From Penicillus capitatus (Eukaryota > Plantae > Chlorophyta): 64,000 bases of DNA. The notes beneath the pieces are model-generated. The model was not told the DNA's origin, made no database searches, and worked only from the letters and a program-made list of their open reading frames with translations. Each line of letters opens with the position of its first letter. Within the stretch, counting starts at the first letter, position 1. Location of the stretch: NCBI GenBank assembly GCA_965649825.1, contig OZ287698.1:1069949-1133948 (forward strand), in the 5' to 3' direction. This document shows, piece after piece, positions 20,698-55,026 of the stretch. The translations under genes and the position numbers were made by a program.

Positions 20698-20711
20698 GAA
20701 AGATAGGTGGG
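20698..20711 (+). promoter_or_regulatory. Polypurine tract
   Basis: GAAAGATAGGTGGG lies 4 nt upstream of the 3' LTR. Confidence 0.6.
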
Positions 20712-20715
20712 CCCA

Positions 20716-20872
20716 TGTTCTAATGGAATACGACGAGAATAATCTAGAAAAAATGAACATTAAAACGGACGTGCTGGAACACAGGATTGTAATTGCGATC
20801 TGTACGTTTCACAAACGAACAGCCTACCGCGAACGCGCATTCCTTTACCCTTTCGAGCGAATTCTCACAACA
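20716..20872 (+). repeat. 3' LTR (157 bp)
   Basis: Matches 8963-9119 and is followed by TSD GTGT. Confidence 0.95.
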
Positions 20873-23535: not shown

Positions 23536-24504
23536 GTCGCTCTCGTTCAGACAAGCAATCGCACTTTGACGAATGTGGCTTGCTGTAGGGTGGCTGCGTA
23601 AAAAGACACACTGTCTTTGAGTTTAACGATTAGATGGCTTTTACATCTCCCTTTGCACAATGTATATCGGAAGAGGACTGTGTTTGAGTTTGGATGCGGC
23701 GGGACCCTTTATTGTTGCCCTCTCTGTTTGTCACAATTCAGCTGTATGGTGGGTGAGCGTCTTTTCTTTTCTCTGAAACTGCGCAGCAAGACGCGGGTGT
23801 CAGAACACTGTTTGAACGATGATTTAAACAGTGGTTGAGGAAAAAGCGCGCTCCCGGCATGTGATTGACGCATTCCGCCAAACAGAACTCTACCCCTAAG
23901 GGGAGGAATTTCGCGCCGAGCACGAACGTCGTCGCGACAGCTACGTTCATCCGATTTTCCAACACAGGCACAAGGCGTTCACTGGGCAACGTGAAGATAC
24001 TCACATGCGTTGTCTCAGTTCCTCAGACGGAATACTACATAGTGCTGGATCTCATGTCGATTCCTCTCTGACGGAGGCAGATCTCGTCCAACCTAATGAA
24101 CCAAACAGCCATTTGCATTGCATTAAATACGGCCTTCTTGCTTTCTGAGCTAAGCCAGCACCAAAGGAAGGCGACAGCGTATGGTTGCGTTGGACCTGTT
24201 CGTTTGATCCAGTCCATAGATTTATTCGATGCAGACATTTGCAGAGTAATGACACGTTCCGCGGCTTTTACCGCCTTCATGTTTAGACAACGGTTTTTGT
24301 CGGATCTCTTCAAGACTGCCGCTCTTCTCGAATTGCCTTCAATCGCTGCAGAACAGGTCGCGATACACTTTACCATCAACTAGCCGTAACAATGACCTGC
24401 AACAGGGTAGAAGAGCCTGGCTATTGTCATCTACGAACAAGCTCCTGTCACACGACCTTGTTGACAACCCCCTCTTCTCAGAAACTCTTTTTATACTCGT
24501 TGTC

Positions 24505-25339
<835 letters not shown>

Positions 25340-25417
25340 GAATCAAGGCACGTCTTCCTTGCTATCCAGACTTATTTAACAATGCTGTTCTCTGGCTCCA
25401 CGCACGACTGCATCTCT

Positions 25418-25624
25418 TTATGCCACGGCGCGGTAAATGCCCATTCCAGCACACGATGCCGAGGCGAGTACGAGGACGTATCTGTGTAGTCCAACAGGCG
25501 GAGGGCGTTTCCAAAGAGCCGAACCGAGATACACACCGGCTCCAAGAAATACGACCGTACCGATAATTCGACAACTTAAACAGTCAGCTTTGATCTCCCG
25601 AGAGGACGAAGGAAAGAGCATCAT
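25418..25624 (-). CDS. Small two-TM protein, DUF4536/DMAC1-like
   Basis: DCLSCRIIGTVVFLGAGVY motif followed by a second hydrophobic helix. Confidence 0.65.
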   Translation of the reverse strand: MMLFPSSSREIKADCLSCRIIGTVVFLGAGVYLGSALWKRPPPVGLHRYVLVLASASCAGMGIYRAVA

Positions 25625-25899
25625 TGAAAATGAAGTTCCTGTCGCCGATAGACCGTTGCTCAGGCCGTTTGCTCTTCCGCACGACGCCGTCGCCAATACT
25701 CAAGGAGAATCAGCGACTGTCTTGGGCACATCCGTCTTCGAGAGATGCACATCCCTGAGATCCATCGGGTTGAGTGTAGAGGCCAGATGATAGCGCATGA
25801 TACCAGTAGACATCATTCTATGCGGCGCTCTCGCCAATGCACCACCTGCCTCACAGAGCTATCGTAGTTGTGCTTTGGATGAGAATGCGGCTCGCTGGT

Positions 25900-26860
25900 A
25901 ACGTTCGTTTCGGTTGAAGAGACCCGAGGGCGGCGCGACCGTCGTCATCGAATGCGTCGATTCGTATTCCCAAAAACGGAAGACGATTTCAGGTACCGTC
26001 ACCGACAGGGCGAACGCGAGAGATCACATGTTTCTTCATGCCCTTCGCTGTAAGAATGAGTGGCAGCTTTTCTGTCGATCGCCGTGCAGAGGCCTCCGCT
26101 TTCTTTTGTTTCTTGACCTTCTCTTGTCGATTTTTTGCCTTCTTCCTTTTCTTGACGCCTCGTTGTCCCTCGCCTTCTATCGGACTGCTCGATTCTTGTT
26201 CGCCAGATATTGTTTCTGCTTCTCTTTGATGTGAGATGGAACGATCTTCGACCGTCCATCCGTCCATAGCACTGCAAATAGCAGCACATGATAGAGAGGT
26301 GCAAACGTAGCATACTTTAGGATCATGTCGAGAGCATGGCAAAGGTTTGTGACCTCTTTCAGCCACTGCGCTGATTCGTCCAAGTCTTGCGATGCTGCAG
26401 AAACAGCCTTGTTCACGTTCAGGAGATGCCAAAGAACATCGACAGACTCCTCTCTTAACAGAAATCTCGTCAACCATAGAACAACATGTGTAATCACACT
26501 TAATGTGTGGGCGCTGAATGCTCTGTGCCACCGCTCTGAGCAAAGAGGACACGTTCATGCACTGGACGCAACTCGCACAGCAATACTGTCGCCAGAGAAA
26601 GGATCTTTCATCTGCTCTGCGTGTGTAAAGGTTAATGCACCAGTCTTTTGGTAACGGTGATATGACGGCGTTGAAGATCTACTTCGGTGAGCGGCATGTA
26701 CGCTCCCTTCTCTTCTCCAATCTCACCCAGTTCGGTCTCACACATCTCGCACACCGTCGCGGCATCTTTTCCTGATCCGAGTATAGATTTAAGTCGTAGT
26801 AGACAGCATTGGCAGGATGGTCACACTTTGATAATAATGTGTGATTTCCGTTCGGCTTTC
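25900..26860 (-). CDS. Hypothetical multi-exon protein with a K/R-rich low-complexity segment (boundaries approximate)
   Basis: Helical ORF pieces at 26177-26497 and 25989-26280 (KKRKKAKNRQEKVKKQKK, NLS-like). No family recognised. Confidence 0.35.
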
Positions 26861-27154
26861 TAAAAGGAATTGAGGCCGCAAAACAGGAGCCCGCTTTGCC
26901 AACGCCTCGAACTACACTCAGCAATGTCTAGTCAGGGTCTTCGACAGGCGTTTGCTGCGCGTCGCATTGCGGAAAGCTGAGAGGGAAAGAGAACTGTCGT
27001 ATTGCGTTGCTCACCAGCCTCTGCGCTGCATGCTGCATTGTCTCTCTCTGCCGTCTTGTCTCATGATAGCGGCATTCCCGCACTGCTCTATATCGACTGC
27101 TTCAACCCTTCTAGCTCCACTCGCTCCGATTCCATCCTATGCGTCTCTCTTCCG

Positions 27155-28817
27155 ATGAAGATTCCGTTCGTTGAAGTCACAGAATGTCTAGGATTGCAGG
27201 TTTGTTAACAAGACAGAGCAAGCCGTACTCTTCAAGGTATCTCTGCTCCCTTAGGCGCCTCCGGGCAGACCAACAGAAGATGACAGGATGGTATGGGAGC
27301 TTCAATGTCAAGGGTAAGGCTCCAAAGGATCCAGCCGTTGGGCATCATTTGGATATAGGGCATTCGTTGCTGCGAGCTGTGGATGCAGAGTGGCAATTTT
27401 TCATTCCCCGTCCAGACGGCCCAGTCCAGAGCGCCCAACAGATGTTGTCCTTTCCCGCCTCTCTGCCGTCGCCTTTGAAGCTCCACCCCATCGCATTACC
27501 GCTCTCTGTTGGCTATCCAATCTCCTTCCCCAAGTCCAGGTCAGCATTCTCATTTCCCTTGTGAGAATGCACGTCTTCCATTGCCATGTCAAAGAACGAT
27601 GAGACTTTGGATGTCCTGGCCGAGCACTTAATGATAGGAAATGAGAAAGGCGAGTTCATGGTGTACGATATTACAGGAGATCTTATCCTGCGACAGAGAC
27701 TCCATATTCATCCCGTTCTTTGCATCCAATCGCATCCCGCATCTATGGGTCAGGGCATCTTGTTTGAATTCAGAACGATAGAATACAGTGCAGGGTCGGA
27801 GAGGGAGGCACTCGAAGATATCTCAGTCGTCTTTACAGATGTTCTGTGCTGCATTCCGCTTCCAGAGCTGCTTGCCTTCATCCGGCTTCATGAAGCTGGA
27901 TCCGGTCAGCGGCACGATCCCACTCTGCAATTGGCGCACGGAAAATTTGGTTTCCCCAAAAATCAGAGCAGTCGATCGGATGGACTGCATCTCGGTGTGC
28001 AGACACCGTCCCTTAAGTCACAACTCAAGAATGCCGACAGCGACGCTGAAGAAACGAAGATTAGTATCCTCTCAGGTAAATTACCTGCCTGTTGATATAC
28101 CTATGGGTTGATGACGTATGTGTATCAGTCGGGCGATCTCCAGCCATTGGAATGTATGATGCGACGGTGCATGGGGCCAAGGGAGGGGCATTGGCAATGA
28201 TTGGCAAACTGGCATCCTCCATGACCATGGGTGTCACCTCCATGGCCTGGAAAAACGGTCGGAAGGTCTTGAAACGGGGTGTCCGGTCTTGGTGGTCCGG
28301 GTCCAAAGACGAAGAGATGCTTCCTACCGAATCCACTTCTCTACAGTTTTCTCTCCGAGACAACAAACGCCACGTCCAGAATCTCATCCCTGCTCCCCAG
28401 AGCGGACTGGCCGTGTCTGCAGACAATCTGGGACGTGTCTTGCTGATCGATATGCAGAAATCCCTTGTTCTCCGAATCTGGAAGGGATATCGTGATGCGC
28501 AGTGTGCCTGGCTGACACATCCAGCACATGATGGTGATGCCGTTGAGCTCTACTTGGTCCTGTACGGATGGCGACGAGAGACATTAGAAGTCTGGAAGAT
28601 GCGCTATGGATCGAGGGTGTTCTCTGTGGCAGTGGGACCCAACTGCAAGCTCCTCGCGACGCGACTCCCCATGGGATTGCCTGAGAATCATCGGTGGTCC
28701 GTCAAATGCGCTGTCTTGGATCACGACAAGGAAGAGATTTGGGATGTGGGAGAGAAAGCGTTTCCTCCTAACAGTGGAAAAGTGGAAGCGATTTGGGACA
28801 TGATGCTGACACCGTGA
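27155..28817 (+). CDS. RAB3GAP2: Rab3 GTPase-activating protein non-catalytic subunit (N-terminal WD-like region)
   Basis: LAVSADNLGRVLLIDMQKSLVLRIWKGYRDAQCAW and LYGWRRETLEVWKMRYG match the RAB3GAP2 N-terminal signature. Start is approximate. Confidence 0.8.
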
Positions 28818-28970
28818 ACGCTGCACGCGTCAGCCATCGCCTATCAACCGTATCTCTGCCATAGACGACGTTCGTATGTATACAGGATGGCGCAATTCGC
28901 ACCATATAGAGCATCTATTGCCGTTTAACGTTCGCGTGTGTACGTTCAGTCTTTTACCCGCGCTGTTCAG

Positions 28971-31900
28971 ATGACGGATGCACGCGACTACGAATGGGCC
29001 GCAATCGGCTATACCGATGACGAGCTCTACGATTTCGCCGAACCGGACCTGTACGACAGTATCTGCGATGTCGGGGTCACCACGGCGACAGGCTTTCGCC
29101 AGGATGACGATCTCGGGCCAAAGCCTCAGTGGGAACACATCGACGAAGGAGCAGGTGTCGATACGTGGGGTCGCCCTGTTCCTCGCGCCCTTCATCCGGC
29201 CACCGATTCAATAAGTGCACTATGGATCCCTTTGCCAAACACGCTCTATGTGGTTTGATCAGTTTTCCAGCAATTCGACGTCGATTTCGTCATCGACGCC
29301 TCGAAGCCTGTCGTGCGCATCTTCGGTGTGAATGATTCCGGTATGCTTGTGAATCTCGGAGACGTTTCTGAGAGTGGCGTGCAGGCAACAGTGTCTGTGC
29401 GTTCGTTCGCGGATTTGAGCCTTACTTCTACATCGAATTGCCACCGGGTTTTACGTCTGGCCACATTCCAGCCTTCAAAGACGAGCTCAAAGTGCGTTTC
29501 TTTCATCGTTTATAGATCTATCGGAGAATCGACGACAGAGACGGGTGAATGCCGATAGCAACCAGACGCATGAGATCACACGCGTGGTGATACAAGAGAA
29601 ATTGAACATCTGGCAATACCAGTTCCATAAACAAACGCAGTTTCTCAAGATCTACACACAACTGCCCAATACCATCTCTGTGTGTCGATCGACTCTGGAG
29701 AATCGATCGTTTGTTGTGAATGATGTGACAGTCGGTCGCTGCCAGACGTTCGAGAGCAATCTCCTCTTTCCCCTCAGGTCCCTCCAGCACATCATGCATC
29801 GCAGCGGATGGTACAGCTGAGCAACAGGTTTATGATCGATTGCGGCATCTCCGGAGGAACCTGGGTCGAGGTACCAGCAGGAAAGTACGCCAGAGTTACT
29901 GGACAGCAGAAACGAACGACATCGCAGATCGAGATCGAACTAGAATATCGCCATCTCATCAATCATCCCCCAGATGGTACCACACCGTCTCTTCAGCACA
30001 GTCATGAGCGAGATCTCTTGTGACAGGAGAGTTTGCGCGTCTGGCACCTTTTCGAATCCTCAGTGTGGATATTGAGTGCGAAGGGCGTAAGGTTCGTGGC
30101 GTTGCTTATCTATGCAAATGATGGGATGGGATGGTGCAGGGCAAGTTTCCCGATCCGGAATTCGATTCTGTCATTCAGATTGCGAGTCGTGTGACATGTT
30201 TGGGCAGTTCCACGTCAGCCGTCAACAATGTTCTCACTCTAAAAGAGTGTTCTCCCATTATTGGTGCTGAAGTCATGTGCTTCGAGAAGGAGACAGATCT
30301 GCTACTGAAATGGCAAAGACTGCTGCGCGTTACCGACCCAGATATCATCATCGGATACAACATCTGCAATTTCGATCTTCCATACCTCGTCAACCGTGCG
30401 AAGAAGCTTCAAATCGACGGTGAATTTGAGTTTTGGGGCCGTATCCGTGCAAGTATATCATCGATTGCATCAATCGCGTTTCCTTTTTCAAAAAGCGCGG
30501 TAGACGCATATCTCTCAGCACTCACGTATCACTTCTAAAACTCAATGTCAACAAAGCCCCCCGACCAAACCCGACCTGGCGAAGACTCCCTCGGTCGATT
30601 TGCGAACAACGCCGACCACTCGTCGCAGTATCGTGTATACCTTCGAGCACGCCTTCACTATCTGCCCTTTCTCAGCAACGCCGCGCTAGCCAATGTCCTG
30701 GAAAAGACCTGCCAGATTGATCCGAGCACTCTTTCCCGTGGTGCACAAGAAGAATCCGTCCGCGCCTACGCTAATGAGACACACCTACGCTTAATTGATG
30801 AAGATTGGCAATTACGCCTGAGTCGAGCACAATCAGAGCAAGAGAAGGCAGTGATTCTACACGAAACAACTTCCGCTCCGCCGTTCCAAAACGAAGAAGT
30901 TCTAAAACGCAAAACGCCAGTAGAATGGAGTGACGAGACGCTAGAATCCTTGGTTATGCATCCGACACGCAGACAGCCCTCAATGTCGCGCCCGGCGACG
31001 CCACCAGTCACGAAAAATGACCTTCCAGTGAAAGGCTTTCCCGCGGTCCTTCAACAAATCAGTAACGAGCTGGAAAAAGACGACACGCTAAAGACTCAAT
31101 TAGTGGGTCTCCTTCAGAACCTATTATCCGGAGTCCAACCACCGAAAAAACTGTTGCAGGAAACCTTGAACGTGCTCACCTCATCGAAGAACAGTATGCA
31201 TGGTCTTAAACTGGGACTCGATCTTAGTATCGAGACCATGAAAGCACACGGCACTCCATGCGTCCAGAGTTCTCTACCTCCGAGAGCACGCGAAAACCCC
31301 AGACCATCTTACGCCAGTATTGCAAGAGCACATGTTCCCGAACCAGTTCGAGCTCCTCCTCGACGACCGACTGCGAGAAATGAACTGGCTGCCATGCGTC
31401 ATGCAATCAGAGACGACGCCAGATCAGTGAAACTGCGATCAGTTAAAGCGGACGGCGCCCGTCCCCCTGGTATAATTGCCAACGCAATCGCGAAGCTTAT
31501 AGATGTCAGCATGCCCACGAATAAGATAGTGGAGGATGTGCGATGCGATTCGCGAGGTACCACATATGTCCAACTATTCACAGAGGGTTTTGAGACAAGA
31601 CTGAAGACACTGCTTAATAAAACCGACTCAAACCAGGTAATCGACCTTGGTGACGCAGGGTACTATACTATGAGCGAACCTACTAAATGCGAAGTAGCGG
31701 GTATGGCTCCTATTGTCATATCAGGGGTCAAGTCGTCGCACAGCCCAGCCCAGATAGCAACAGAAATCTGGGAAATGAACGCGACGAGATGGGGCCTTAG
31801 CAACGAACGGTGCGCACAGCACATCGCTGGTATCTCCCGCCTAAATCGTCGAGTCAGACCACGAGACGGAGAAGACAAATCACCTAATCCAACCTGGGTA

Positions 31901-34900
31901 CCTTCAAAGAGCATCAAAATGTTTGTTTCTAGAGACCTCCTTCGAGCCATGGCCACCCCCGAAGAAAGATACCTGATTCGCTACGAGTATGAATTCCTAG
32001 AGGGCCGCCCGTTCAACAAACCACTCCGAGTCTGCGAAAACTGCGGTACATTGGCGGAACACGACGCCAGAGCATGTCGCCGGCCTCCACGGTGCAACAT
32101 TTGTCACGGAAACCACCGATCAGCTGACTGCAAGAGGAACATCCCCTTTGCCCCTAATATGCCCTCTGGATCTGTTCGAGATACTCCCAGGAGCAAAGCT
32201 AGATCCCCCCTACTGACCAAGACCTCGGGTGAGAGAAGAGAAGCCTTGGTACATGACACGCCCTCCGACTACGGCAGACATAACACAGATGATATGTGCA
32301 TTGACTCGAAGCCCCAAGATGAATGAGTTTCAGACCGACACGAGCCATTGTCCAGTCCCCTCAGATTTACACCCTCTCTACTCTTCCATCAGTAACCCCT
32401 CTCTGCACGAAGCTCGATCTCGATCTCGATCTCGATCTCGATTAACTGTTAGCTCCAACTCTACGCTTACCCTTGATTCACTTTTGATACTACAACAAAA
32501 TGTCAGAGCAAATAAACTGCTTACTGAACTGACCTTGCTCAAACATTCTCCGGATCTTTTCCTTATTTCAGACCCTCCTAAATGTATTAGAGAAGGCTGG
32601 TGCCCCCCAGGCTTTCGATGCGTCCTGCCGCACGGCCACTGTGGGACCGGCCACTGTTGTATCGTTATCAAAGATTACATAGCTTATAACGAAGTTTTCA
32701 CTTCCAGTAACAGAGTTTGCGCACTAACCATTAAAGTTAACTCTCGTTCCATCGGTTTTGTTTGCTGCTATATTCAGCACACAAGTGCTGCAGGTCTTCA
32801 GCACGTTAAAGATACTCATCTTTCTCTTGAGTCCCAAGGAGTATCCTCGGTTATTGGCGGAGACTTTAACTCCCATAGCAGCTTATGGGGCCCGATCTCA
32901 ACACCTACGTGCAATTCTGGACGACAAGTAGAGAATTGGCTCGAACACTCGACACTCAGCCTCCACAATCATTACCCCTGCATCGAAACATTCCGCAACT
33001 CAAGAAATGAACGAAGCTGGATAGACCTTACATGCACATCGGATAGAATTGCCAACTGGATCCAAAACTGGATAGTGACCCGTTGCGATGAAGACCTCTC
33101 CGATCACAACCTGATCAGCTTCAGAATCGTCACAGAGGAAAACGTTAAACTCTCCGATCGCATTCAAGACTGGAGAAACTGCAACTGGGACTCCCTCAGT
33201 CTTTATCTGGAGAGAGACCTTAAAAACGAAGGATGGCTCGACTTCGAATGGGACAAGATAACCACGGGCGAAGAATTGGACACCCGTATCTTGGAACTCG
33301 AAGATGCAATCAGACGCTCAACCAGAAAACTAATCCCCATGAGAAGGAAGACTTCGATGAGGAAACACTGGTGGAATCCGGAACTTACTCGTTTGCACAG
33401 AGACCTCAAAAGAAAACAACGAAGACTCTGGAAACTCACATCAAAAGGCCGCCCTCCAGATGTCCTCGAATCAGCACGAATCGATAGAGATGAGGCGAAA
33501 AAGAATTTTCAAAAAGAGGCCAACGCTGCAAAAACCAAGTCCTGGAGAATTTTTCTCGAAAACACAGATAAAACGAACATGTGGTCCAATTTCAAGCGCA
33601 TCACCAAGCAAAAGAAGAGAGTCGATCTGTCGTATGTCACGGATTTGGAAGACCAAGTCCGGTCTTCCCCCCTGGAGGTGGCCAATGCTCTGGCCGAGAA
33701 ATTCATCCCGGACATTCCAGGAACTTGCTCCCCGACTGAAGCCATGAATGATGACGAACCGATGGTCGCCTCAGACACACTTCTCACAGATCTGCCTATT
33801 GCATTAACGGATTTCCCTGAAGTCACTGAGAGTGAAATAGTCAGAGGCGTATTCGGCAACAAGCCATATGGCGCTGTTGGAATCGACAGAATCCCCAATC
33901 AACTCTACAGGATAGCATTTCCCTTCCTAAAAAGAATGCTATTGGGTATTGTGAACTGCGTACTGAGAACCTCACACCACTGTCATCATTGGAAAACTGC
34001 TGCCGTCGTCGCAGTACCCAAGACCACCCAACATCTTAACTCGGTAAAATCTCTCCGTCCGATCAGTCTGTTGTGTGCCTTAGGAAAAATAGTTGAAAAA
34101 ATCATCACGGACCGTCTGGCACACTGGGCAGAATCTAACATGGTCTTGTCTGACAAGCAGTTCGGTTTCAGGAAGCAAAAGTCTTGCGAGACTGCATTGG
34201 CCAACCTCATTGACAGAGCTGAATCATGCTTCGATCAAGGACAGGACATGCTGGTAGCCTCCCTAGACCTGTCGTCAGCTTTTGACACTATTAATGGCTC
34301 CAAATTACTTTCGAGACTGAGGGACCTGGAAGTCCCTCCGTACCTGCTATCTTGGCTGCAGAACTATGTGAACGATCGCCACTGTGTCATTAAGGTTGCT
34401 GACCAAGAGTTCAGTTACCCAGTTCTCTCGGCCTGCCCACAAGGCAGTCCACTGAGCCCTTTACTGTTCAACCTTTACGTTAACCAAGTTCTGGAGCAGC
34501 ACGAAACTCCCCCCTCTAATACTCCAAGACTCTCTCCCCCTGACGCTCATTCTTCGCAATCCGGCATACAGGCTTATGCTGATGATCTACTGGTGTGGAC
34601 TACAGGTCCCCTGGACACAGAAAACCAGTCTAACCTCCAATCACATCTAGATAAAATCCACCTCTGGACCAAAGAAGCCGGTCTGATGCTAAACCCAACA
34701 AAGTGTGTCACCATCCGACTATCTCGAAAGCGGGGCGGAAGGCCTCCTCTTAAGATGTTGATCGACGGGACGGAACTAGTAGAAAACTCAGTGATCAAGT
34801 ACCTTGGACTCCAGATCGACAGGAAACTCCAATGGCGAGAACACGTCAAATTCGCAGTGCAAAAAGCCAACAAACGACTGCTCACTCTCAGGAAGATTTC

Positions 34901-37900
34901 TGGCCATCGCTGGGGGATTGATTCGACGATCATGGCAAAGCTAGTAAAGATGGGAGTTCTCCCAACCCTTTACTATGCTGCTCCAATCTGGGCCTCCGCT
35001 CGAGCCAATCCTCAAACCCTGCGATCACTGGAAGTGATTACAAGACAACTTGCTCTGATTGTGACAGGATGTCTAAAGACTACAGCCTACGCACCGTGCT
35101 ATGCACTATCTGGACTATATGAACCAGATCTGGAAATCTCTCGCCGCTTAATAGTGTTCGGAAGACGCTTACACTCAATCGAGCGATCCTGCATACAAAG
35201 AACCACAAGGTCACAGTTTCGCCTCAACACGGAAGCAAAAAGAATCGCACGACAACAAGTAACCCCTGACATTCTTCTCTCGCCCAGTCAAATCGCTTGG
35301 GGCATCGCACCTTACGAGTCGAACCTCTGGATTCGACCAGGTAATTCCAAACTTCCATCCTCCCCAAGCGACGGCAAATACTACTGCATCCTTAAGAAAC
35401 TACCAGACTCCCTCTGTTTCGCATGGTCCTGGCGCCATGCTTGTGTCTCACAGGAAGGTTCCTTTGCTTTACCTCTTAGCCTTGAAGAAGATCAAGCTGA
35501 AGCGATCGGCATCCTACTATCGCTGCCTCGCATCTACGCACAAGAAGCCCAAGAATGCAGATATCGATCACCTGACTGTACTCTACAACGCCTCATTCTG
35601 CACTCTAAGAACTCAGGACTTCGGAAATATCTGCTCAAGCTGCAAAACATCCCACGTCTCGCTTACCTGTTGCAGCTATGGATTCGAAATATCCAACTCA
35701 ATGGCATTGAAGTCAGCTGGCTTCGCCCGGATGAATTCTGCGATCTCAGTGCGTGGCGCCGCACCAAGATTATTGCTAAGCAGTGCAACTCGCACCTCCC
35801 GCCTCAAAGATGTGAAGACCCGTCTTCTAGCGAAGGCACTTTGAGTCTTGAGGACCTCTTATCGCTCGCCGGCCTGTGCAACAAGAAGATGAAGAAGATC
35901 CTGAAAGACTACTCGAATGCCTACATGAATGCCACTCTCCTTGCCTCTGACGTCGGTCTTGCCACCACTGACCTGATCAGGATCTGCCCCGACTTCAAGT
36001 TTACTGGAAACTCCTTCCCTGCCCATGGACTTGATCGAACAACTGGCTCCGCCCTGAATCAATTCCTAACTGCCCACATGCCAGCAAACACGTATCTCGA
36101 AAGATTCCAACTGCCCTCTTTTCATAAGATCTGCTGCCACGACCACTGGAATGAACTGGATAACACGACCCATGACTTCAGAGATCATATCCTCATGCAG
36201 TGCGACGACCAGCATATCCAAGCGCTCCGTGTGGCGACCTTCCAAGGAGTCATTCCTCCGTACTCCAGATGTATTACATGGCCAACAGCAATGTCAAACA
36301 TCAACTCTCTGGCAAGTTTCGCAAAGGCCATCCTGAAGATTCCATGGTTTTACCGCCTCAAACAGAACAACACGACTTGGTCGGCAGAAACATCCCAATC
36401 TTGCCTCTCGCTTGATCCGAATGCCGCTTTTGCCAGTTGCATGGAGCATCCATCTACCTCACTGGGTAATAGATCGGCGATGAACTGGCTACTGAGCATA
36501 AGTTAAAAGCCGCCCTGCCCCACCATCAATGCCCTCGGCCATAACCTCCGTCTGAGCCAGATTTACTCGTCATACTGTCAAGGATCGCCCTGCCTGGGGT
36601 AGCTCGTGAGGTAGTCTGGTCTCCATTCGCAACTGACCAGGCTGATTCGGATTCCAAAGATGTGATCTGTCCTTCTTTCATTGTGAAACGAGTCTTTTAC
36701 AACACGTGGTCCTTGTTCAAGTGGCTGATATGCGTTATGCACTGCCACTATAATCCCCTTTAAATGATGATCCGTGCAAGTCGCCTGAAGATGCGCAACT
36801 CCCAATTCAGTTCCAAGGCATACGGCACGCACGAGTACAAAGAGATCAGTGTGGAAGGCCGCGTTCAGTTTGACTTGATGCTGTCCATCCAGAGAGATCA
36901 CAAACTCAGCTCCTACTCACTCAATTCCGTTTCGGCGCACTTTCTGGGGGAGCAGAAAGAAGATGTGCACCATTCGTGTATTACGGATCTACAGAACGGC
37001 AATCCCGAAACACGGCGACGTTTGGCCGTCTACTGCATCAAAGCACGATAAGTGATGTGACAACACCAGTGGACTGACTCTATGGTTATCTAGGATGCAT
37101 ACTTGCCACAGAGGCTGATCGACCGACTGATGTACATGTACAACTATATGGAGATGGCCCGCGTCACGGGTGTCCCTTTCAGTTATCTCCTGACAAAGTG
37201 TCCTCCAGCTTCTCTCCAAAGGGATCGAGCATTACTCTATTTGTGTGATATAGAGGGCAAAGTATCAAGGTCTACTCTCAGCTTTTGAGAAAAGCACGAA
37301 ACAAAGGCATCATCATTCCGAGTCTCAAAGTGCGTGGTGGCTTCTCTCTGTGATGTTGTCGAGATGTGTGTATTCAGTCTGGTGGTCAAACGCAGGGTGT
37401 GGCCTACGAAGGAGCGACGGTGTTAGACGCATGTCAAGGGTACTATGATTCTCCAGTGGCGACACTCGATTTTGCCTCACTGTATCCTTCCATCATGATA
37501 GCTCACAATCTCTGCTACACTACTCTTGTTCCCAAAGACAAGTACAGGCAGCACAAGATGTTTTCATTTTCGATGCATTCCTGTCTGTGCGTGCAGGATC
37601 GCAACGCTCGCTCCCAAGGAGACTGAGATGTCGCCATGTGGAAACGCATTTGTCAAGGCATCTGTGCAGAAGGGTCTATTGCCTGAAGTACTGGAGGAAT
37701 TGCTGGCTGCCAGAAAACGGGCAAAAGCAGATTTGAAGAAAGCCACCGATCCTTTTCAGAAAGCTGTGTTAGATGGTCGCCAACTGGCATTGAAAGTCAG
37801 TGCTAACAGTGTCTATGGCTTCACCGGTGCGACGGTTGGCAAACTGCCATGTCTCGAGATTTCTTCGAGCGTTACTGCCTACGGCCGTGAAATGATCCAC

Positions 37901-39168
37901 CATACCAGACGGCTGGTTCTCAGTCTCTTCAACAGAGACAAAGGATACGAAGCGGACTGTGAGGTCATTTACGGAGACACCGATTCCGTCATGGTCAATT
38001 TCAATGTCCCCAGCATCGAAAGATCGATGGAGTTGGGCAAGAAGGCGGCTGAGGAGATCACTCGGACCTTCCCTCCGCCAGTGAAACTGGAATTTGAGAA
38101 GGTCTACTGTCCTTACCTTCTCATGACAAAGAAGCGATATGCTGGGTTGCTCTGGACACGACCTGAAAAGTACGACAAGATGGACACAAAGGGCATCGAA
38201 TCGGTGAGACGGGACAATTGCTTGCTGGTACGAAGAGTGGTCACGACCTCTCTGGAGAAACTCCTCATTCAACGAGACATTGAAGGCGCCGTGAAATATG
38301 TCAAGGGGACGATCTCTGATCTGCTGATGAACCGATTGGATCTCAGCGAACTGGTCGTGTCCAAAGTGAGAGATCTCTTGGCGAGTGGGCAAGGCAACCG
38401 TGTGCGTTTAGGGACTGTCGAGAGACGCCGGAGACTACGAGACCAAGATTGCACACGTCGAGCTGGCAAAGAAGATGCAGAAGCGCGATCCGGCTACCGC
38501 ACCAGGTGCGTCTGTCCCTCGCCTGCCCAGGCCGTCGATCGATGCTGCGAAGGGATCGGCGATCGGGTGCCATATGTCATTATCAAGGCTGCCAAGGGCG
38601 CAAAGGCGTACGAGAAGGCAGAGGATCCCATCTTTGCACTGGAACACAACCTGCCGATCGACTTCCAGCACTACGTCGATCACCATCTGTCGCAGCCGAT
38701 CGTTCGGATCTTCGAGCCCATTCTGAAGGAGAGAGTCAAGGAGCTTCTCAACGGAGAGCACACCCGAAGCGTCATTGTCTCGACGCCGTCTGCCGCCTCG
38801 GGAGGCATCATGAGATTCGTCAAGACCCGTCCCAAGTGCTTGGGATGCAAAGCGCCGTTGGACGAAGGGTTCGCCACGCTCTGCAAGCACTGCGAGCCCG
38901 ACATGCCGCGAATCTACGTCGACCATCTCGCCAAGTGGGATCCACCTTGTGCGAGACATCCATCGATCGGCAGCCGTGCCGTTCTAGGGTGAATGACCTG
39001 GAAGACATGTTCGGTCGACTGTGGACACAATGTCAGACCTGTCAGGGCAGTATCATGCAGGAGGTGCTCTGCACCAATCGAGACTGTCCGATCTTCTACA
39101 GGAGAAAGAAGGTGCGCAAGGATCTCAACGACGCCCACAAGAACCTCGTCAAATTCAACGACGCATAA
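28971..39168 (+). CDS. POLD1: DNA polymerase delta catalytic subunit, interrupted in a coding exon by LINE B
   Basis: WGRP...FQQ N-terminus; ExoI DIEC, Exo[10 protein letters not shown], ExoIII LAVYCIKDA; Pol motifs [18 protein letters not shown] and YGDTDS; CysA (CLGC..CKHC) and CysB (CQTC..C..DC). Confidence 0.95.
30545..32326 (+). CDS. LINE B ORF1 (Gag-like, two zinc knuckles)
   Basis: 593-aa ORF with [15 protein letters not shown] and [13 protein letters not shown]; shares a domain with LINE A ORF1. Confidence 0.9.
   Translation: MSTKPPDQTRPGEDSLGRFANNADHSSQYRVYLRARLHYLPFLSNAALANVLEKTCQIDPSTLSRGAQEESVRAYANETHLRLIDEDWQLRLSRAQSEQEKAVILHETTSAPPFQNEEVLKRKTPVEWSDETLESLVMHPTRRQPSMSRPATPPVTKNDLPVKGFPAVLQQISNELEKDDTLKTQLVGLLQNLLSGVQPPKKLLQETLNVLTSSKNSMHGLKLGLDLSIETMKAHGTPCVQSSLPPRARENPRPSYASIARAHVPEPVRAPPRRPTARNELAAMRHAIRDDARSVKLRSVKADGARPPGIIANAIAKLIDVSMPTNKIVEDVRCDSRGTTYVQLFTEGFETRLKTLLNKTDSNQVIDLGDAGYYTMSEPTKCEVAGMAPIVISGVKSSHSPAQIATEIWEMNATRWGLSNERCAQHIAGISRLNRRVRPRDGEDKSPNPTWVPSKSIKMFVSRDLLRAMATPEERYLIRYEYEFLEGRPFNKPLRVCENCGTLAEHDARACRRPPRCNICHGNHRSADCKRNIPFAPNMPSGSVRDTPRSKARSPLLTKTSGERREALVHDTPSDYGRHNTDDMCIDSKPQDE
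32319..36506 (+). CDS. LINE B ORF2 (APE endonuclease, RT, RNase H-like domain, C-terminal Cys/His motif)
   Basis: [29 protein letters not shown]; [22 protein letters not shown]; C-terminal CCH...DHILMQC. The ATG at 32319 overlaps the ORF1 stop. Confidence 0.92.
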   Translation: MNEFQTDTSHCPVPSDLHPLYSSISNPSLHEARSRSRSRSRLTVSSNSTLTLDSLLILQQNVRANKLLTELTLLKHSPDLFLISDPPKCIREGWCPPGFRCVLPHGHCGTGHCCIVIKDYIAYNEVFTSSNRVCALTIKVNSRSIGFVCCYIQHTSAAGLQHVKDTHLSLESQGVSSVIGGDFNSHSSLWGPISTPTCNSGRQVENWLEHSTLSLHNHYPCIETFRNSRNERSWIDLTCTSDRIANWIQNWIVTRCDEDLSDHNLISFRIVTEENVKLSDRIQDWRNCNWDSLSLYLERDLKNEGWLDFEWDKITTGEELDTRILELEDAIRRSTRKLIPMRRKTSMRKHWWNPELTRLHRDLKRKQRRLWKLTSKGRPPDVLESARIDRDEAKKNFQKEANAAKTKSWRIFLENTDKTNMWSNFKRITKQKKRVDLSYVTDLEDQVRSSPLEVANALAEKFIPDIPGTCSPTEAMNDDEPMVASDTLLTDLPIALTDFPEVTESEIVRGVFGNKPYGAVGIDRIPNQLYRIAFPFLKRMLLGIVNCVLRTSHHCHHWKTAAVVAVPKTTQHLNSVKSLRPISLLCALGKIVEKIITDRLAHWAESNMVLSDKQFGFRKQKSCETALANLIDRAESCFDQGQDMLVASLDLSSAFDTINGSKLLSRLRDLEVPPYLLSWLQNYVNDRHCVIKVADQEFSYPVLSACPQGSPLSPLLFNLYVNQVLEQHETPPSNTPRLSPPDAHSSQSGIQAYADDLLVWTTGPLDTENQSNLQSHLDKIHLWTKEAGLMLNPTKCVTIRLSRKRGGRPPLKMLIDGTELVENSVIKYLGLQIDRKLQWREHVKFAVQKANKRLLTLRKISGHRWGIDSTIMAKLVKMGVLPTLYYAAPIWASARANPQTLRSLEVITRQLALIVTGCLKTTAYAPCYALSGLYEPDLEISRRLIVFGRRLHSIERSCIQRTTRSQFRLNTEAKRIARQQVTPDILLSPSQIAWGIAPYESNLWIRPGNSKLPSSPSDGKYYCILKKLPDSLCFAWSWRHACVSQEGSFALPLSLEEDQAEAIGILLSLPRIYAQEAQECRYRSPDCTLQRLILHSKNSGLRKYLLKLQNIPRLAYLLQLWIRNIQLNGIEVSWLRPDEFCDLSAWRRTKIIAKQCNSHLPPQRCEDPSSSEGTLSLEDLLSLAGLCNKKMKKILKDYSNAYMNATLLASDVGLATTDLIRICPDFKFTGNSFPAHGLDRTTGSALNQFLTAHMPANTYLERFQLPSFHKICCHDHWNELDNTTHDFRDHILMQCDDQHIQALRVATFQGVIPPYSRCITWPTAMSNINSLASFAKAILKIPWFYRLKQNNTTWSAETSQSCLSLDPNAAFASCMEHPSTSLGNRSAMNWLLSIS

Positions 39169-39229
39169 ACGTGTCGCGCTTTCACACAAGGAACCCATGC
39201 GCGCGAGTGATGTAAAGAAGCCAGAGACG

Positions 39230-40991
39230 TCAGAGAAGCCATGGCTTGTCCGCCCTTGGCTTTCTCTTGAAGATTTTCGTCACTCTCTTCGACAGCGAAT
39301 TGAATTTTTGGATCGTCTCTTCAAAACGGCGATCCGTTCGAACCTCTGCCAAGTCTGGATCGCTGCGCAATGTCTCGAAGTCTTCAAACTCCAAATCCAG
39401 CAGCGCTTCGAGACATGTCATGGCGCTGTCCATTTCTCCAAGCTTCCCATAGCAGCAGACGATGTTGTACAGCGCCGCGTGTTCTTCACTCTGACTCGGT
39501 CCGCTGAATTCCGTCGCCTGTCCGGCGTAACGAAATCTGCCCTCGCCTGAAAGCCACCTCGTTGACAGCATGGACAGACACGTCCTCTATTCTTACCCGG
39601 CAGTTCAAGAGAGGCGTTGAAAGCATCGAGTGCTTCTGAATAGCGTTGCTCTTGAAATCTCTCCAGGGGCATCATCTTTCAGGAGCTGCATGGCAGTGAC
39701 CGGGGCACCATAGAATCTCCCGTTAAGTTTGGAGCGTACAGAAAGGAGTGTTCCATCCAGAGAGGCGCCAGCATAAACTTTACGGCAGAAACAGAACCCC
39801 GTGGCCCGAGACACTCGTGTCCCTTCTGCGCTGCCCACCTAACACGGCAGTATAGAAGACGTCGTCTCCCGATGCGATGTTATTCCCACCCGTAATGTAA
39901 TGGAGTGCTGGAATCCGGGTCCTACTCCGAGAGAGGCACTTACCCCTCCATTCAACCCAATTTGCGTCTCCCCTGGAATGATAGATGCTTGTCGGATGAA
40001 AGCAGAGAGAGACCTACCTGTGAATGCGTTAATGGATTCGGGTGTGGACAACAGGATGACGGAATCCATCAGTTGCCCTCCGATCTGCAATCCTGCGCCG
40101 AAGCTGGCAGAACTCAGTGAACAGGGTCGACCCCAGTGCCGCTCGCTACCCACCCTCGACAGCACGAGTCCTTTGGAGCAGGACATGCTCTCGGGTATGA
40201 AAGTGCATCTACTGCACGTTACCTGTCCCGAATCGGCAGGAACTCACACCGAATGCCACTTTGAGCTCGGAGAGAACGACAATGCCCTCTGTTGAATTGA
40301 GGAGATCCTCTGGCACCACTCCAGGGACACTGAGCACTAACTGGCAGGACAGAAGTGTGAAAATGTGTACGCTCGCAAGCGTGTCATCACAGAAACATCG
40401 CCACTCAAAATCAATGTGTCAACGCCTTCCGTTCGTTTCGCTTCACTCCAAGGCGATCAATAGTTTCCCCCTAACGGTCTGCAACGCTCGTACACACGCC
40501 GTTGTCGCATCCATGACGTCGCATCTGTCGAAAGGCGAACGACATCCGTCAGGCACTGTCTGGTGGTGCTTTTTGCCCTGGACTCTGGATTGTTGCGATG
40601 CCGGTTATCCGATCGCGCTCTTTGCGTCCATACATCCCAACCCGCACGTACATACACATGTACTCGACGGCAAACCGTTGTTTGTACATCCATGCGGTGA
40701 TAGACACAGTTCTCAACCGTACTGTCTCTTGTCCTCGTTCGGGGTGGTGGTCTCGGTGACGATGGGTTCGTCGCAGTCCAGCATGAACGCGCGTCGCAGC
40801 TTGAGCTCTTTCTTCAGTGGCTGTTCATCGACGGACGAGTTGCTTTTCAAATGGAATGCCCCGCTTGACGAGGCATTTCTAGAAAAGGAAAACTCAGAAG
40901 TCCTCTGTATTAAGGCAGCAGCCAAACTGCGTTTAAGAAACGGCTCCAGCGTGGGATGCGACTGTCTGCGTTGCGCAAAGAGAATGCTCAT
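39230..40991 (-). CDS. SYLF/Ysc84 (DUF500) domain protein, apparently joined to a C-terminal TPR (MET1/TEF30-like) region
   Basis: SYLF segments: VPEDLLNSTEGIVVL..KVAFG, GLVLSR, GAGLQIGGQLMDSVILL, YAGASLDGTLL..NGRFYG. TPR segments: ERFQEQRYSEALDAF, ALYNIVCCYGKLG, LRSDPDL. The frame between them is offset by 1 nt at G4 39666-39669. Start is approximate. Confidence 0.6.
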
Positions 40992-41042
40992 GCATAGGGG
41001 AAGGAAGCGGAAGCGGAGTTCCAGTTCAGTGACGACGGGGCC

Positions 41043-41576
41043 TTGGTGCTGGGCGGATTCGAGGACGTCGACTTGACGCTCGACGGGGAGTTATCGGATC
41101 GCTGTGGCGTTCGTGGCGATCGGATGCCATTGGATCCTGCGAGTTATCGAAAAATACAGCAGGAAGTCGAATCTCTCAAGAGAGAAAACAGCAGGCAATG
41201 GATCACAGATGTCATCATCATGCCTTGCGATGTTTTTGCGATTGGTAGGTTATCTCGAACATTGTGTGAAATGGATGCCCAGGCGGCAGATCTGGTGGCC
41301 CAATGTTCAGCAGCGTTGCAAGACAACAATGCGCAGCTGCGTGCTGCACATCAGTTGGCGTCAGAACTGAGTGGCGTTGTCGAATGCCTGAAGGAAGACG
41401 CGCAGAAAAAAGCAGATCTGATAACGGAACTCAAGGTGGAGAAGGATCTACTGAACGGCCGTTTGGAAGCAGCACTGGACGAGATCTACAGAACAACGGG
41501 AAATTCGACGTGCACTGTGCGAGAGCGGCTGCCTATGATGCCAACATCTCCTCAGTGTCCCGGAGATTTCAGTTAG
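41043..41576 (+). CDS. Hypothetical short coiled-coil protein
   Basis: Heptad-rich C-terminal half (QLRAAHQLASELSGVVECLKEDAQKKADLITELKVEK). Exon structure unresolved. Confidence 0.35.
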   Translation: MVLGGFEDVDLTLDGELSDRCGVRGDRMPLDPASYRKIQQEVESLKRENSRQWITDVIIMPCDVFAIGRLSRTLCEMDAQAADLVAQCSAALQDNNAQLRAAHQLASELSGVVECLKEDAQKKADLITELKVEKDLLNGRLEAALDEIYRTTGNSTCTVRERLPMMPTSPQCPGDFS

Positions 41577-42411
41577 CAGCATCTCTGTCAGATGTTCCAG
41601 CGGCAACAATGTGTTCACCTGCTTTGTCGGAGTTCTCATGAGACAACGCCTTCTCTACTCGAGCGTGTTTTGGAGTCGAGTAGTTTTCTGTGTATACCTA
41701 CCTGGCTAAACGCAAATGATCAGTCAGAAATAAAACTGACATGCGATTGATTCCATGCTGCTTTCGTTGTCATTGTGCTCGGTGGCTGCAGCTCGTGCCT
41801 GATCTTGTCAGTCGACAGTTCCTGTTTGTCGCTGGTTGTCCTTCCTGCTCTAAATCTTCTTTAGTTGTGCTCGCCGCTGTGACTATCTGCCGATCCTTCA
41901 ATCATAGCGCGGCGATGGTGCGATTCACAGACACCTCCGAGCAGAAACACGATCGATGTTGTGTATGTTTACGTCAAGCATGAGGTTTGTTAGGGGTCGA
42001 TGTTGGTGTCGATGTTCTTCTGTTGTTTGTTTCAAATCATTCATTCTTTTGTGCTATGGGAGATATGGCTATGGTGACGCATAGAGGCAATATTATCATC
42101 ATGTCTTTTTCTCCACGGAACCAGCGATGTGGCACAACAATGTCAGGGAGTCCTTGATCCATTCTCTGGAAAAAATAAGATCACCAACACTGTGTAACGT
42201 CTTGGCCAACAACAACGCACCTTGAAATTGTTGATGTCGGATGTAAAGAAAACTGACTGCGTGAGAGTGCGCATGCTGTATGATTCGACGTCTGTAAACA
42301 GCCACGGCAGGCATTGAGGTCGAAGACAGACGTATGCGTCTGTCTGTTACAAGTCGTCTAAGAGGATGATGATGAGATTCGCAGAAGCTCTATTACAGGA
42401 CACGTGTGTCT

Positions 42412-45400
42412 CTATTTGGACATGGAGATGTACGGAGCTTCATCCGTTTGCGATCGAGGACGATCATTGCTGCCGCGTCTGCTTTGTTTTGTGGGAGGAG
42501 GTGTTCCGAAAAGGGCAAGAAGAATGGGCAGAACGACGAGTCCGTGCCAGGCACCCAGCAGCACCAAAGCCATATACATGCGGAAGAAGTAGATGCGGAA
42601 GAGTTTTGTCGTGGCAGAGGCAAGAACGATGACGCCCAGGAACTTTGTCAGCGTAATGCCGCTGATAACAGAGATGCCAACACCCTGAACAGCGGCGGCG
42701 ACACGACCCACACGACTTCCTGGCATTGTCATGAAGGCATGAGCCACATGCGTGCAGAATTCCACGGCAATGCCAACAGACATGGTTAGGTTGACAACGG
42801 ATACGCCGTTGAGCTTCACCTCTGCGAGATAACTCACGCCGACGATGTCCACGACGATCATCACGACGCACAGCATCATGATGATAGCTGCTCGGAAGCT
42901 GCTCAGAAAGACCCAGCAAACGAGGAAGATGGCTCCAACGGCGACGCTGATCATGACGGCAGCGATGGGGATCAGATCCAGGTACTGCTGGAAATAGATA
43001 TGGAAGAGGGAGTAGACATAGATCTCCAGTCCCAGAGACTCCTTCAATGCGTCCGCGAATTCGTGCGTATCCTTGAGTGCTTCGATGTAGTCATTCTGCG
43101 AGACAAGCGTCGAATAGTACGTGCGAAAAGCCGAGGCCCGGATCACTTCGTGGTCCAGGCCCACGATATCGGAGCTGTTGTGCTTCGCGTGCTGGATGTA
43201 GTCTTCGTACGTTCCATGGCCTCCACGCGGACAGATCTCTCCGGGAGTGCTCTCCATGAATCTCGGAAGGTATTCTTGGTAGAGAGGCGTGTCAGATGTG
43301 ATATGCACCGTACAGGGGATGCACGCCGGATCTGTGTCCTCATAGGGACAGTGTTCTGTTGTGTTGCCTCGTCGTCTGCAACAGCTTGGCGACTGGATCC
43401 ACATAAGAAATTCGTCGATCCATGATGTGACCGGAGCTGCCAGATGAGCGACGTGGGCGCGGGCAGCCAAGTCAATCCGAGAAACGAGGGAATCTGGGAG
43501 GCATCCAGCAATGCCGCAGATTTCGTCTGGATGGTCCGAAGCGTTCGACACGTTCATGTTCTCGACCACGAACATGACAGGCGCCCCGGCTCGCATCAAC
43601 GGCAGTCCGTCTGTGTAGAAGTCTTGCAGATAGGAGTCCTGTGGGAAAGCGACCTGTTCCTTCATGCCCATCTCCATTCGCCCCGTCAGCACACAGGAGA
43701 CGGCGAACAGGATCACAGTGAGAGACAGAATGGCACTTCTGATCCACTTGCGATAAGCAGCCAGGAGAAAAGGAACGTAGTTGTCTGAGATGAATCTCTG
43801 AAAGGCATTCTCCGGAATTGGCAGCTGGATCTCTTGAGGAGGCGTTCCTCTTTCCCAGACAATGTACTCCGCCCCGTCCGAGAGTGGATCTTCGTGGACG
43901 CGGAGACAGGGGACACAGTCTGTTCGATTGTTCTCGCGTCGGATGGTGTCAAGAACTAGCAGCGCAGCGAACAGGGTACATTGCAGGACGAAATCCAGTA
44001 GAATGGCGAAGCAGGCAGAGAGCGAGAAATTGCGTACGGCCGGAATGGGTGCAATGGCGGCCAAGCCAAAGGCCAAAGCCTCGGACGCGGCAGCACAGGT
44101 GATGGACGGTCCCACTTCGGCCATTGCACTGCCGAGTCTCAAATAGAGCGGCAGACCTGGATCCTATACGGCAGACACACGGTTCGTGGTGTTGATTCCG
44201 TCCACAGACTGGATTGCCTACCAGGCTACGCAGTTCATTTGCCAGAATGAACATGTTGTCGACGCCCACTGCCAGCACAAGGAAGGGCAGGACTTCCAGG
44301 ACGATCATACTGACTTTAAGTTCGAGCAAACTGACGAGGCCGATCGCTCCCAGCAGTGACAGGATGACAATGCCAATTCCTTCAAGGGCAAGGATGACGT
44401 GACTGCGCACCCAGATGCTATCTGAGACGCCACTGTGCCGCTTGGTGAGGAATGTGAGCGAGCAGGCAATGTAGATGAACATCACGACGTATGAGATGAC
44501 AACCGTCGGAGCGTCCATGTATGTCTCTCTGTCCACTTCGTCCTCGGTCGAGCGTTCGGCACTGTAGGTCAACTGGAGGTGTGCCTCTTTGGCCAAGTCT
44601 GTCAAATACGTCTTGGACGCTTCGAGAAAAGCTTCTTCCCATGCCATCGCTGCGCTGCGTTTCTCCTCGCTGCTGTCCAGCAGGTAGGTCACAACGAATG
44701 CTGTGGAATCATTCACGTAACTATCGAAGGAGTCGTCCATGGGAAATCCGCCCAGGACAAGGTTGGGATCTGGGCAGAGGAGTAAGAAGAGTGAGATGGA
44801 TGATGCTTTCTGTACCCATGGGAGATTCGAAGGCGCTTCTGCAGTCTGTCGTCCAGTGTTGAAAACAGCGATCTGCACCGAAACGCACGCATGCATCTTT
44901 GTCATCGGCCTCCTCACAGGATGCCTGCCACGCAGCGCGATCCATCTGCCAGTACTGCAGAACGCTCTGAATGGCACAGACTTCCAAAGGCTTGTAACAC
45001 ACGTCCTCTAGTCGCACGACGAAGGACTGATTCCCATCCGAATAGCGACCTTAATGAGAACAGACGCATGGACTGGTGGCGACATTGACATCGTCCCCAC
45101 CTTCTATCTGATCCACCAATTCCTGCAGGCGAAACGTCAGGTTCAGGTTGTCGGCCGTCACGATGCTGGGCAGATGGTTGACAGAGGTATGAGGAGAGGG
45201 TGTCGAGGGTGTGGAAGAGATGATGTGATTCTCAACGCGGTAGAATGCACCGAATGCTTCTCTGTATTTTCTCTGTTCTCTTTCTGTTCTTGATCCCTTG
45301 GGAGTCCACAGCGACTGGGGAGAAGTCTCGAGGCGGCAGTTGAGGTTCCCCATGCACACAAGGCCGATCGCGACGAGCGAGACGGCGATGACAGAGTACG

Positions 45401-54991: not shown

Positions 54992-55026
54992 CTTCGCGCA
55001 ATTCCCGAACCGCTGTGGCCATTATC

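Follow-up and report, generated by a model that had tools for sequence, protein, structure and literature searches.

How does an organism carry a broken copy of a gene that it cannot do without? The question is raised by the 64,000-nucleotide stretch of contig OZ287698.1 analysed here (the window), in which POLD1, the gene for the catalytic subunit of DNA polymerase delta (Pol delta), is interrupted within a coding exon by a complete long interspersed nuclear element (LINE). Pol delta is an essential replicative polymerase. Our results very probably answer the question as follows: the LINE has inserted into one of two POLD1 copies that differ by about 1% and are probably the two haplotypes of a diploid thallus, so that the interrupted copy would be a recessive loss-of-function allele sheltered by the other.

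The insert is delimited by a direct repeat, ATCCGTGCAAGT, at 30443-30454 and 36770-36781. The two copies match perfectly over exactly 12 bp, the bases outside them differ, and between them lie 6,315 nt (30455-36769) containing two long open reading frames (ORFs) in the sense orientation. For any fixed pair of positions the chance probability of a 12-bp match is 4^-12, and the site is found empty, with one copy of the 12-mer at exactly the same boundaries, on three independent contigs, one from the same assembly as the window (locus L003) and two from a sister species (L001 and L010). Because these three contigs carry the 12-mer in single copy at these boundaries, the repeat is a true target site duplication (TSD) and not a chance match. 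When the flanks are joined in silico they form one open exon, reading ...FWGRIRAS up to the junction and continuing beyond it, and both flanks match the exonuclease domain of family-B polymerases (Pfam DNA_pol_B_exo1). The insertion point corresponds approximately to human POLD1 residues 427/428, with ExoII (D402) on one side and ExoIII (D515) on the other. Read without splicing, the POLD1 frame (ORF 30131-30538) continues past the junction (RAS and onwards) for 27 LINE-encoded codons and then stops. An earlier note on this DNA had described an intact young LINE in a coding exon of the gene for the Pol delta catalytic subunit, and every element of that description was confirmed. The exact repeat and the three empty-site contigs bear out its claim that the 12-bp TSD is POLD1 coding sequence (IRAS), and the joined flanks its claim that removal of the insert restores the WGRIRAS frame; the human alignment and the motif coordinates place the insertion between ExoII and ExoIII, as it had proposed, the unspliced frame does stop at 30538 (stop codon 30536-30538), and both LINE ORFs (ORF1 30545-32326, ORF2 open over 32217-36506) are uninterrupted.

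An undamaged copy of the gene is present in the same assembly. The window sequence is part of ENA assembly ERZ25074695, contig ctg340422_42x_l (635,390 bp), and the empty site of L003 lies on a second contig of that assembly, ctg340486_42x_l (1,018,928 bp), whose depth is also 42x. The contigs were found through a joined-exon search, cluster members and exact look-ups among exon ORFs of ENA metagenome assemblies. L003 aligns to window positions 23677-30454 at 99.07% identity (6.8 kb) and to 36770-47063 at 99.31% (10.3 kb); the alignments break exactly at 30454 and 36770 and overlap by the 12-mer, which occurs once, at L003 10313-10324. In the distal region the contigs are 99.67% identical over 14.1 kb, and ctg340486 has a 3' fragment of POLD1 at record position 1,014,821, compared with 1,014,829 expected from collinearity. 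Collinearity of the two contigs thus extends over 44 kb or more (window 23.7-67.4 kb), with the LINE as the sole large difference in this span. The exon protein of L003 (P0154) is identical to that of the joined exon of the window, and P0154 and P0282 are identical on both contigs. Between 28600 and 39900 the filled and empty copies differ by 38 substitutions and 0 indels. In the coding segments that align to human POLD1 there are 14 synonymous differences and 2 conservative replacements (A/T and D/E), both in the N-terminal part, where conservation is poor, and neither copy has a stop apart from that introduced by the LINE. Single nucleotide polymorphisms (SNPs) on both sides of the site distinguish the copies, with T at 30370 and G at 36994 in the window and C and A in the other copy. 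Only two copies of the POLD1 exon were seen per sample. Judging by these comparisons, ctg340486 encodes a complete POLD1, and the filled copy has not decayed other than through the LINE. Filled and empty states of one locus are therefore found in one sample, at equal depth, collinear and near-identical, as for a heterozygous insertion. Locating what is probably the second haplotype resolves the paradox of a broken essential gene that the raw contigs present. It also favours one of the options offered in the earlier note, a heterozygous insertion complemented by another full copy; the search for other complete POLD1 copies that the note had suggested was run, and L003 is the intact copy that it found. 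To the left of window position 22118, L003 has no match to the window, and the haplotypes are structurally different there.

The sister species (assembly ERZ26696514) has an orthologous locus with approximately 86% DNA identity to the window. This locus too is found on two contigs, L001 (181x) and L010 (167x), which share 99.03% identity over 20.6 kb and both have the empty site. The locus copies cluster by species, at 99% identity within and 86% between species. Two copies about 1% apart and of similar depth, recurring and grouped by species, are the pattern expected of diploid alleles, which argues against an old duplication. Old paralogs were rejected as an explanation of the two contigs because the copies group by species.

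To identify the interrupted gene, the joined locus was translated in three frames and compared with solved structures (PDB). Human Pol delta was matched with an E-value of 6.5e-208 and yeast Pol3 with 2.4e-179; the matches to Pol zeta (1e-44) and Pol alpha (1e-28) are far weaker. Exons in the window cover human POLD1 residues 78-1100 with no block missing; the C-terminus aligns to human residues 1041-1100, and zf-C4pol was matched in the sister-species ortholog. These alignments indicate that the gene encodes a complete Pol delta catalytic subunit, in preference to any other family-B polymerase. As in human POLD1 and yeast Pol3, ExoI-III, motifs A-C and the CysA/CysB C-terminal domain are all present; the differences are that one allele here is broken between ExoII and ExoIII and that a truncated 3' duplicate of the gene lies 24 kb downstream, on both haplotypes. 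The gene is intron-rich, and on either side of the LINE-bearing exon the gap to the next coding segment is approximately 50 nt. Two details of its exon structure may be added. In both haplotypes, as in the sister species, the intron at 37043-37093, after ...AVYCIK, starts with GC (GCACGA...) and resembles a GC-AG intron; at the same position in two remoter relatives the intron apparently starts with GT, judging by the read-through residues ('KV..', P0002 and P0155). The ORF at 37628-38992, called as a 454-aa POLD1 'exon', conceals two or more short introns that lack stops: the true reading frame exits it at about 38378-38400 and re-enters at about 38549, and the segment corresponding to human residues 882-917 is in another frame.

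The two ORFs of the element overlap by 38 nt, as ORF2 starts (32289) before the end of ORF1. ORF1 has no Pfam match; an identical 593-aa product is present in the protein collection, and its 90% cluster includes a second 593-aa member from another contig of the sample (L002). Aligned with human L1 ORF2p, ORF2 has the nuclease motifs GDFN and SDH and the reverse transcriptase motif F/YADD (FADD in human L1) at matching positions, and its endonuclease also gives a weak match to that of TRAS1. No known domain, and no RNase H, was found with Pfam in the approximately 560-aa C-terminal region of ORF2, and a repeat search of 29500-37800 found no terminal direct or inverted repeat of the element. Its sequence therefore identifies it as an autonomous APE-type non-long-terminal-repeat (non-LTR) retrotransposon with intact ORFs and with the catalytic motifs of endonuclease and reverse transcriptase. 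Human LINE-1, whose ORF2p is the best-matching solved structure, shares the order of APE-type endonuclease and reverse transcriptase as well as the aligned GDFN/SDH/YADD motifs. However, the similarity is weak (E 1e-15), the endonuclease model matched is PF14529 and not the L1-typical PF03372, an (ATG)n microsatellite tail takes the place of poly(A), and ORF2 has its domain-less C-terminal region of approximately 560 aa without RNase H. With two-ORF APE-type LINEs in general the element shares the CCHC knuckles of ORF1, variable TSDs of 12-14 bp, 5'-truncated copies, a common 5' start and the lack of terminal repeats. ORF2 was compared with 1.84 billion representatives in a full protein scan, in addition to Pfam and PDB. 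The nearest relatives in the full scan are about ten proteins with 31-37% identity and the same architecture (endonuclease, reverse transcriptase, C-terminus without known domain), followed by thousands at 26-30%; in a word-indexed search, relatives outside the element's own family have 22-27% identity only. The element represents a new LINE family of an ordinary kind, and as the nearest proteins are unnamed and at most 37% identical, we leave its clade unnamed. The N-terminus of ORF2 contains a coding (TCGATC)n microsatellite, encoding (SR)n, at 32397-32440, and the two intact copies of the element differ in its length by one 6-nt unit.

Other copies of the family bear on the age of the insertion. 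The ORF2 protein is found 100% identical on another contig of the same sample. The contig L002 (10x) carries a second full-length copy with both ORFs intact, which is 99.8% identical to that in the window: the two differ by 6 substitutions in 6,315 nt and by a 6-nt change in the coding microsatellite, and at their ends by 1 nt on the 5' side and by the length of the tail. The TSD of this copy is (AT)GGCCGCTGCAGT, 12-14 bp. A third full-length copy, L007 (23x contig of 115 kb), is 97.6% identical to the window copy, contains an insert of approximately 290 bp and has broken ORFs; no TSD was evident for it. L008 (15x contig) is 5' truncated, beginning at element position 4927, and has a 13-bp TSD. 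In the sister species, L009 is truncated at element position 1624, is 86.6% identical and has a 14-bp TSD. All three full-length copies begin at the same position, the window copy and L007 with ATATCATCG and L002 with ATAATCATCG, which has one extra base. The tails vary in their ATG run, with ATGATGATGATG(AT) in L002 up to its TSD, ATGATGATGATGATG in L007 and ATGATGATGATG in L009. Variable TSDs, (ATG)n tails of differing length and 5'-truncated copies are typical traces of target-primed reverse transcription, by which these copies appear to have been inserted. The intact LINE copies are approximately 0.1% apart, compared with approximately 0.7-0.9% between the haplotypes; the POLD1 insertion is thus much younger, by about ten times, than the divergence of the two gene copies. 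The two near-identical intact copies suggest that the family is probably still mobile. The perfect TSD, the 99.8% identity of the intact L002 copy and the catalytic motifs all support the earlier proposal of a recent insertion by a probably active family. All other LINE-bearing contigs of the sample are shallower than the Mb-scale 42x pair (L002 10x, L008 15x and L007 23x). These low-depth contigs could be minority insertion variants, from mosaic nuclei or other genotypes, or poorly assembled repeats.

The nature of the host matters to how the interrupted allele is read. The window has a DDX23/PRP28 gene on the minus strand at 52856-54991, and its identity to the counterpart in Caulerpa lentillifera is 82%, in Bryopsis sp. 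KO-2023 73% and in Ostreobium quekettii 71%; remoter green algae and land plants rank after these Bryopsidales matches. Scans for Rfam families and tRNAs in the window gave no result of taxonomic use. The Caulerpa gene model fuses DDX23 with the neighbouring JmjC gene, an adjacency that is conserved with the window. On this evidence the host is a siphonous, multinucleate alga of the Bryopsidales, on the Caulerpa/Halimeda side, and the guess of a multinucleate alga made from the letters of the window was a good one, with Caulerpa as the nearest match. The host is a species other than Caulerpa lentillifera, since the GC content of the window is approximately 50% and that reported for the C. lentillifera genome is 40.4% (bioRxiv 10.1101/2023.11.22.568388).

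In our preferred account, target-primed reverse transcription recently placed an autonomous LINE, in the sense orientation, in a coding exon of one POLD1 copy. The sense insertion, the end of the reading frame within the element and the intact copy at equal contig depth are shown directly, and the allelic state of the two contigs, the loss of function and the continued mobility of the family are inferred. The filled allele would be truncated after about 430 residues, leaving the N-terminal domain with ExoI and ExoII only, that is, half of the exonuclease domain and no polymerase domain; such a product would presumably be non-functional and the allele null. The other haplotype, with its empty site and a full-length POLD1 consistent with constraint, would supply Pol delta, ctg340422 and ctg340486 being the likely two haplotypes within the same nuclei of one diploid thallus. 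Exon-disrupting LINE polymorphisms that behave as recessive or heterozygous nulls are familiar from the classical L1 exon insertions in mammals and from transposable element insertion alleles in plants. The locus resembles these cases in that a coding exon holds a full-length sense insert, the frame stops soon after entering the element and the second allele is intact, and it differs from them in that the host is a coenocytic Bryopsidales alga and the gene hit encodes an essential replicative polymerase. Thalli of the group are assumed to be diploid or polyploid (PMC11670288, PMC11441479); those of the suborder are taken as diploid, clonal propagation is common in the group, and polyploidy is frequent across the Bryopsidales (PMC11670288). 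Clonal propagation could maintain the filled allele.

Several points weigh against a sheltered allele in a diploid thallus. The depths were taken from contig names only, as averages over 0.6-1 Mb. Halimeda opuntia is a documented polyploid whose four subgenomes have nearly equal depth (PMC11441479). A 14-kb intrachromosomal duplicate with 98.55% identity lies on ctg340422 itself, so near-identical paralogs are possible in this genome. The 115-kb contig at 23x would be compatible with a single-copy depth of approximately 21x, in which case the 42x contigs would be collapsed pairs. Finally, because the sequences were assembled from a metagenome, two thalli sampled together could in principle have contributed one contig each. 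The Halimeda subgenomes and the polyploidy across the order (PMC11441479, PMC11670288), the 14-kb segment duplicated about 100 kb away and a depth of perhaps 21x per chromosome copy would also suit a different history, in which the two contigs are homeologs or recent large-scale duplicates (polyploid subgenomes) and the LINE is fixed, possibly homozygous, in a redundant POLD1 copy that is turning into a pseudogene. We consider this unlikely. There are two exon copies only per sample, and as the copies group by species (99% versus 86%) the duplication must have happened recently or separately in each species, or else have been followed by homogenisation. Apart from the LINE the filled copy carries no lesion, with 14 synonymous against 2 replacement differences in coding sequence, and the insertion is about ten times younger than the divergence of the two copies. 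Slightly less probable still is that the insertion is mosaic, being confined to a subset of the nuclei in the coenocytic thallus, or to a subset of co-sampled thalli, and threaded by the assembler into the 42x contig. Siphonous algae are single cells with very many nuclei in a shared cytoplasm (PMC4487195), so a lethal nuclear genotype could persist, and minority variants would be expected to have reduced depth, as do the three remaining LINE-bearing contigs (the one with the intact 99.8% copy at 10x, the others at 15x and 23x), though this is a hint only. However, short contigs of low depth may be poorly assembled repeats or other genotypes, and in H. opuntia no evidence was found for genotypically different nuclei (PMC11441479). 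Mosaicism is compatible with, and not exclusive of, a sheltered allele. In a similarly doubtful extension of it, the LINE would be transposing somatically within a giant multinucleate cell, the POLD1 insertion and the intact 10x copy each marking a sub-population of nuclei. If so, a nucleus of lethal genotype would survive on Pol delta supplied from neighbouring nuclei through the shared cytoplasm, and the insertion polymorphisms of the family would be a direct marker of nuclear heterogeneity in coenocytic algae.

Two further explanations do away with a null allele altogether, and both are far less credible. The LINE might be spliced out of the POLD1 transcript like an intron, so that the filled copy still yields Pol delta, and it is true that the insert plus one TSD measures 6,327 nt, a multiple of 3, and that the 5' junction creates a GT (caaGTATAT). 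When all in-frame GT/GC...AG pairs were enumerated, none restored the original sequence and none resembled a native site, the nearest ones dropping or adding at least 5 codons at poor sites; moreover, the gaps that flank the LINE-bearing exon are approximately 50 nt, compared with 6.3 kb here, and the intact allele makes removal at the RNA level unnecessary. Splicing is therefore very improbable, and RNA-level removal, which the earlier note had listed among its options, has no sequence support. It is just as hard to believe that the metagenome assembler wrongly threaded a LINE copy into POLD1. The assembly type and the existence of near-identical LINE copies make such an error conceivable, but a mis-join would not create a perfect 12-bp target duplication at the exact boundaries of the empty site, SNPs of the same haplotype are found on both flanks, and the element is complete from the common 5' end to the tail. 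An insert of 6.3 kb is also within the span of typical HiFi reads, the data type that the naming style of the contigs suggests.

A sheltered POLD1 null would be ordinary biology, and what is new here is modest: a LINE family that is young and probably active, in an order of algae that has been little studied, and a natural null allele of POLD1. The locus provides a base-pair-resolution record of an autonomous LINE family that is probably active, currently or very recently, in the Bryopsidales, in whose three surveyed genomes LINEs were reported to be infrequent (bioRxiv 10.1101/2023.11.22.568388). It also provides what appears to be a natural knockout allele of an essential replication gene beside an intact copy. 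LINE insertion polymorphisms, together with the SNPs of the flanking haplotypes, could serve to mark ploidy, clonality and possible nuclear mosaicism in siphonous algae.

Table 1. Coordinates of POLD1, the inserted LINE and associated features in the window.
Feature	Position	Strand	Remarks
POLD1 5' part, start ATG 28971, several short introns	28971-30454	+	PDB alignments, human residues 78-427; Pfam DNA_pol_B_exo1 1e-27
ExoI (SVDIECEG)	30062-30085	+	motif coordinates
ExoII (NICNFD)	30359-30388	+	motif coordinates
Left TSD copy ATCCGTGCAAGT	30443-30454	+	POLD1 codons I-R-A-S; single copy in empty alleles L003, L001, L010
LINE (non-LTR retrotransposon), full-length, autonomous, 6,315 bp	30455-36769	+ (POLD1 orientation)	absent from L003, L001, L010
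Premature POLD1 stop	30536-30538	+	ORF 30131-30538; protein P0152
LINE ORF1, 593 aa	30545-32326	+	two CCHC-type zinc knuckles near C-terminus (32033-32077, 32093-32131)
LINE ORF2, 1,405 aa from first ATG 32289, frame open from 32217, stop 36506	32289-36506	+	called gene in L004
APE-type endonuclease of ORF2	~32757-33116	+	Pfam Exo_endo_phos_2 8.2e-14; GGDFNSH 32856-32876, SDHNLISF 33099-33122
Reverse transcriptase of ORF2	~34017-34817	+	Pfam RVT_1 9.8e-39; YADD 34575-34586
LINE 3' tail (ATG)2	36764-36769	+	no poly(A)
Right TSD copy ATCCGTGCAAGT	36770-36781	+	
POLD1 3' part, stop 39166-39168	36782-39168	+	PDB alignments, human residues 428-1100; includes CysA/CysB C-terminal domain
ExoIII	36914-36967	+	motif coordinates
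Polymerase motif A (DFASLYPS)	37468-37491	+	motif coordinates
Polymerase motif B (KVSANSVYG)	37793-37819	+	motif coordinates
Polymerase motif C (YGDTDS)	37970-37987	+	motif coordinates
Partial POLD1 duplicate running off window end	63041-64000	+	continues in L006 10001-14803

The neighbourhood of the gene has been rearranged. At the right end of the window the partial POLD1 duplicate starts with a piece of approximately 117 bp (63041-63157) that is about 80% identical to the 5' end of POLD1, and from 63340 on it is a 99% copy of POLD1 38069-39666, which starts after motif C. It is without the N-terminal domain, the exonuclease domain and most of the polymerase domain, and it is present on the other haplotype too (P0284). 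It was considered as a full POLD1 that might complement the filled copy and was rejected, since it begins after motif C with only the 80% identical 5' remnant before it. The duplicate is followed by Ysc84, GST (GST_C_3) and YccV-like genes, the neighbours of POLD1 in the sister species. It arose as a by-product when an older rearrangement put approximately 24 kb (NPC1, CDK5RAP3, DDX23, JmjC and MRS2) behind the complete POLD1.

The 14-kb segment mentioned above, window positions 48568-62622, contains MRS2-like, JmjC and DDX23 genes and has its direct duplicate (L005) about 100 kb away on the same contig, with 98.55% DNA identity. The two copies encode the same DDX23 protein (100% identity) and have different flanks, with BRCA2_OB1 on one side and AA_permease on the other. 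Upstream of POLD1, positions 8963-20872 are occupied by an LTR retrotransposon of approximately 11.9 kb, with 157-bp LTRs that are 98% identical, TG...CA ends and GTGT on both sides. It contains an RVT_1 ORF (13971-15560), an RNase H-like ORF (18884-19660) and an integrase (rve, approximately 20131-20723), and within it the GC content steps from approximately 55% (12-17 kb) to approximately 40% (17-21 kb). Further upstream, 4268-5946 and 6738-8421 form a direct duplicate with 87% identity, the first copy of which includes an FMO-like (flavin monooxygenase) ORF at 5138-5968.

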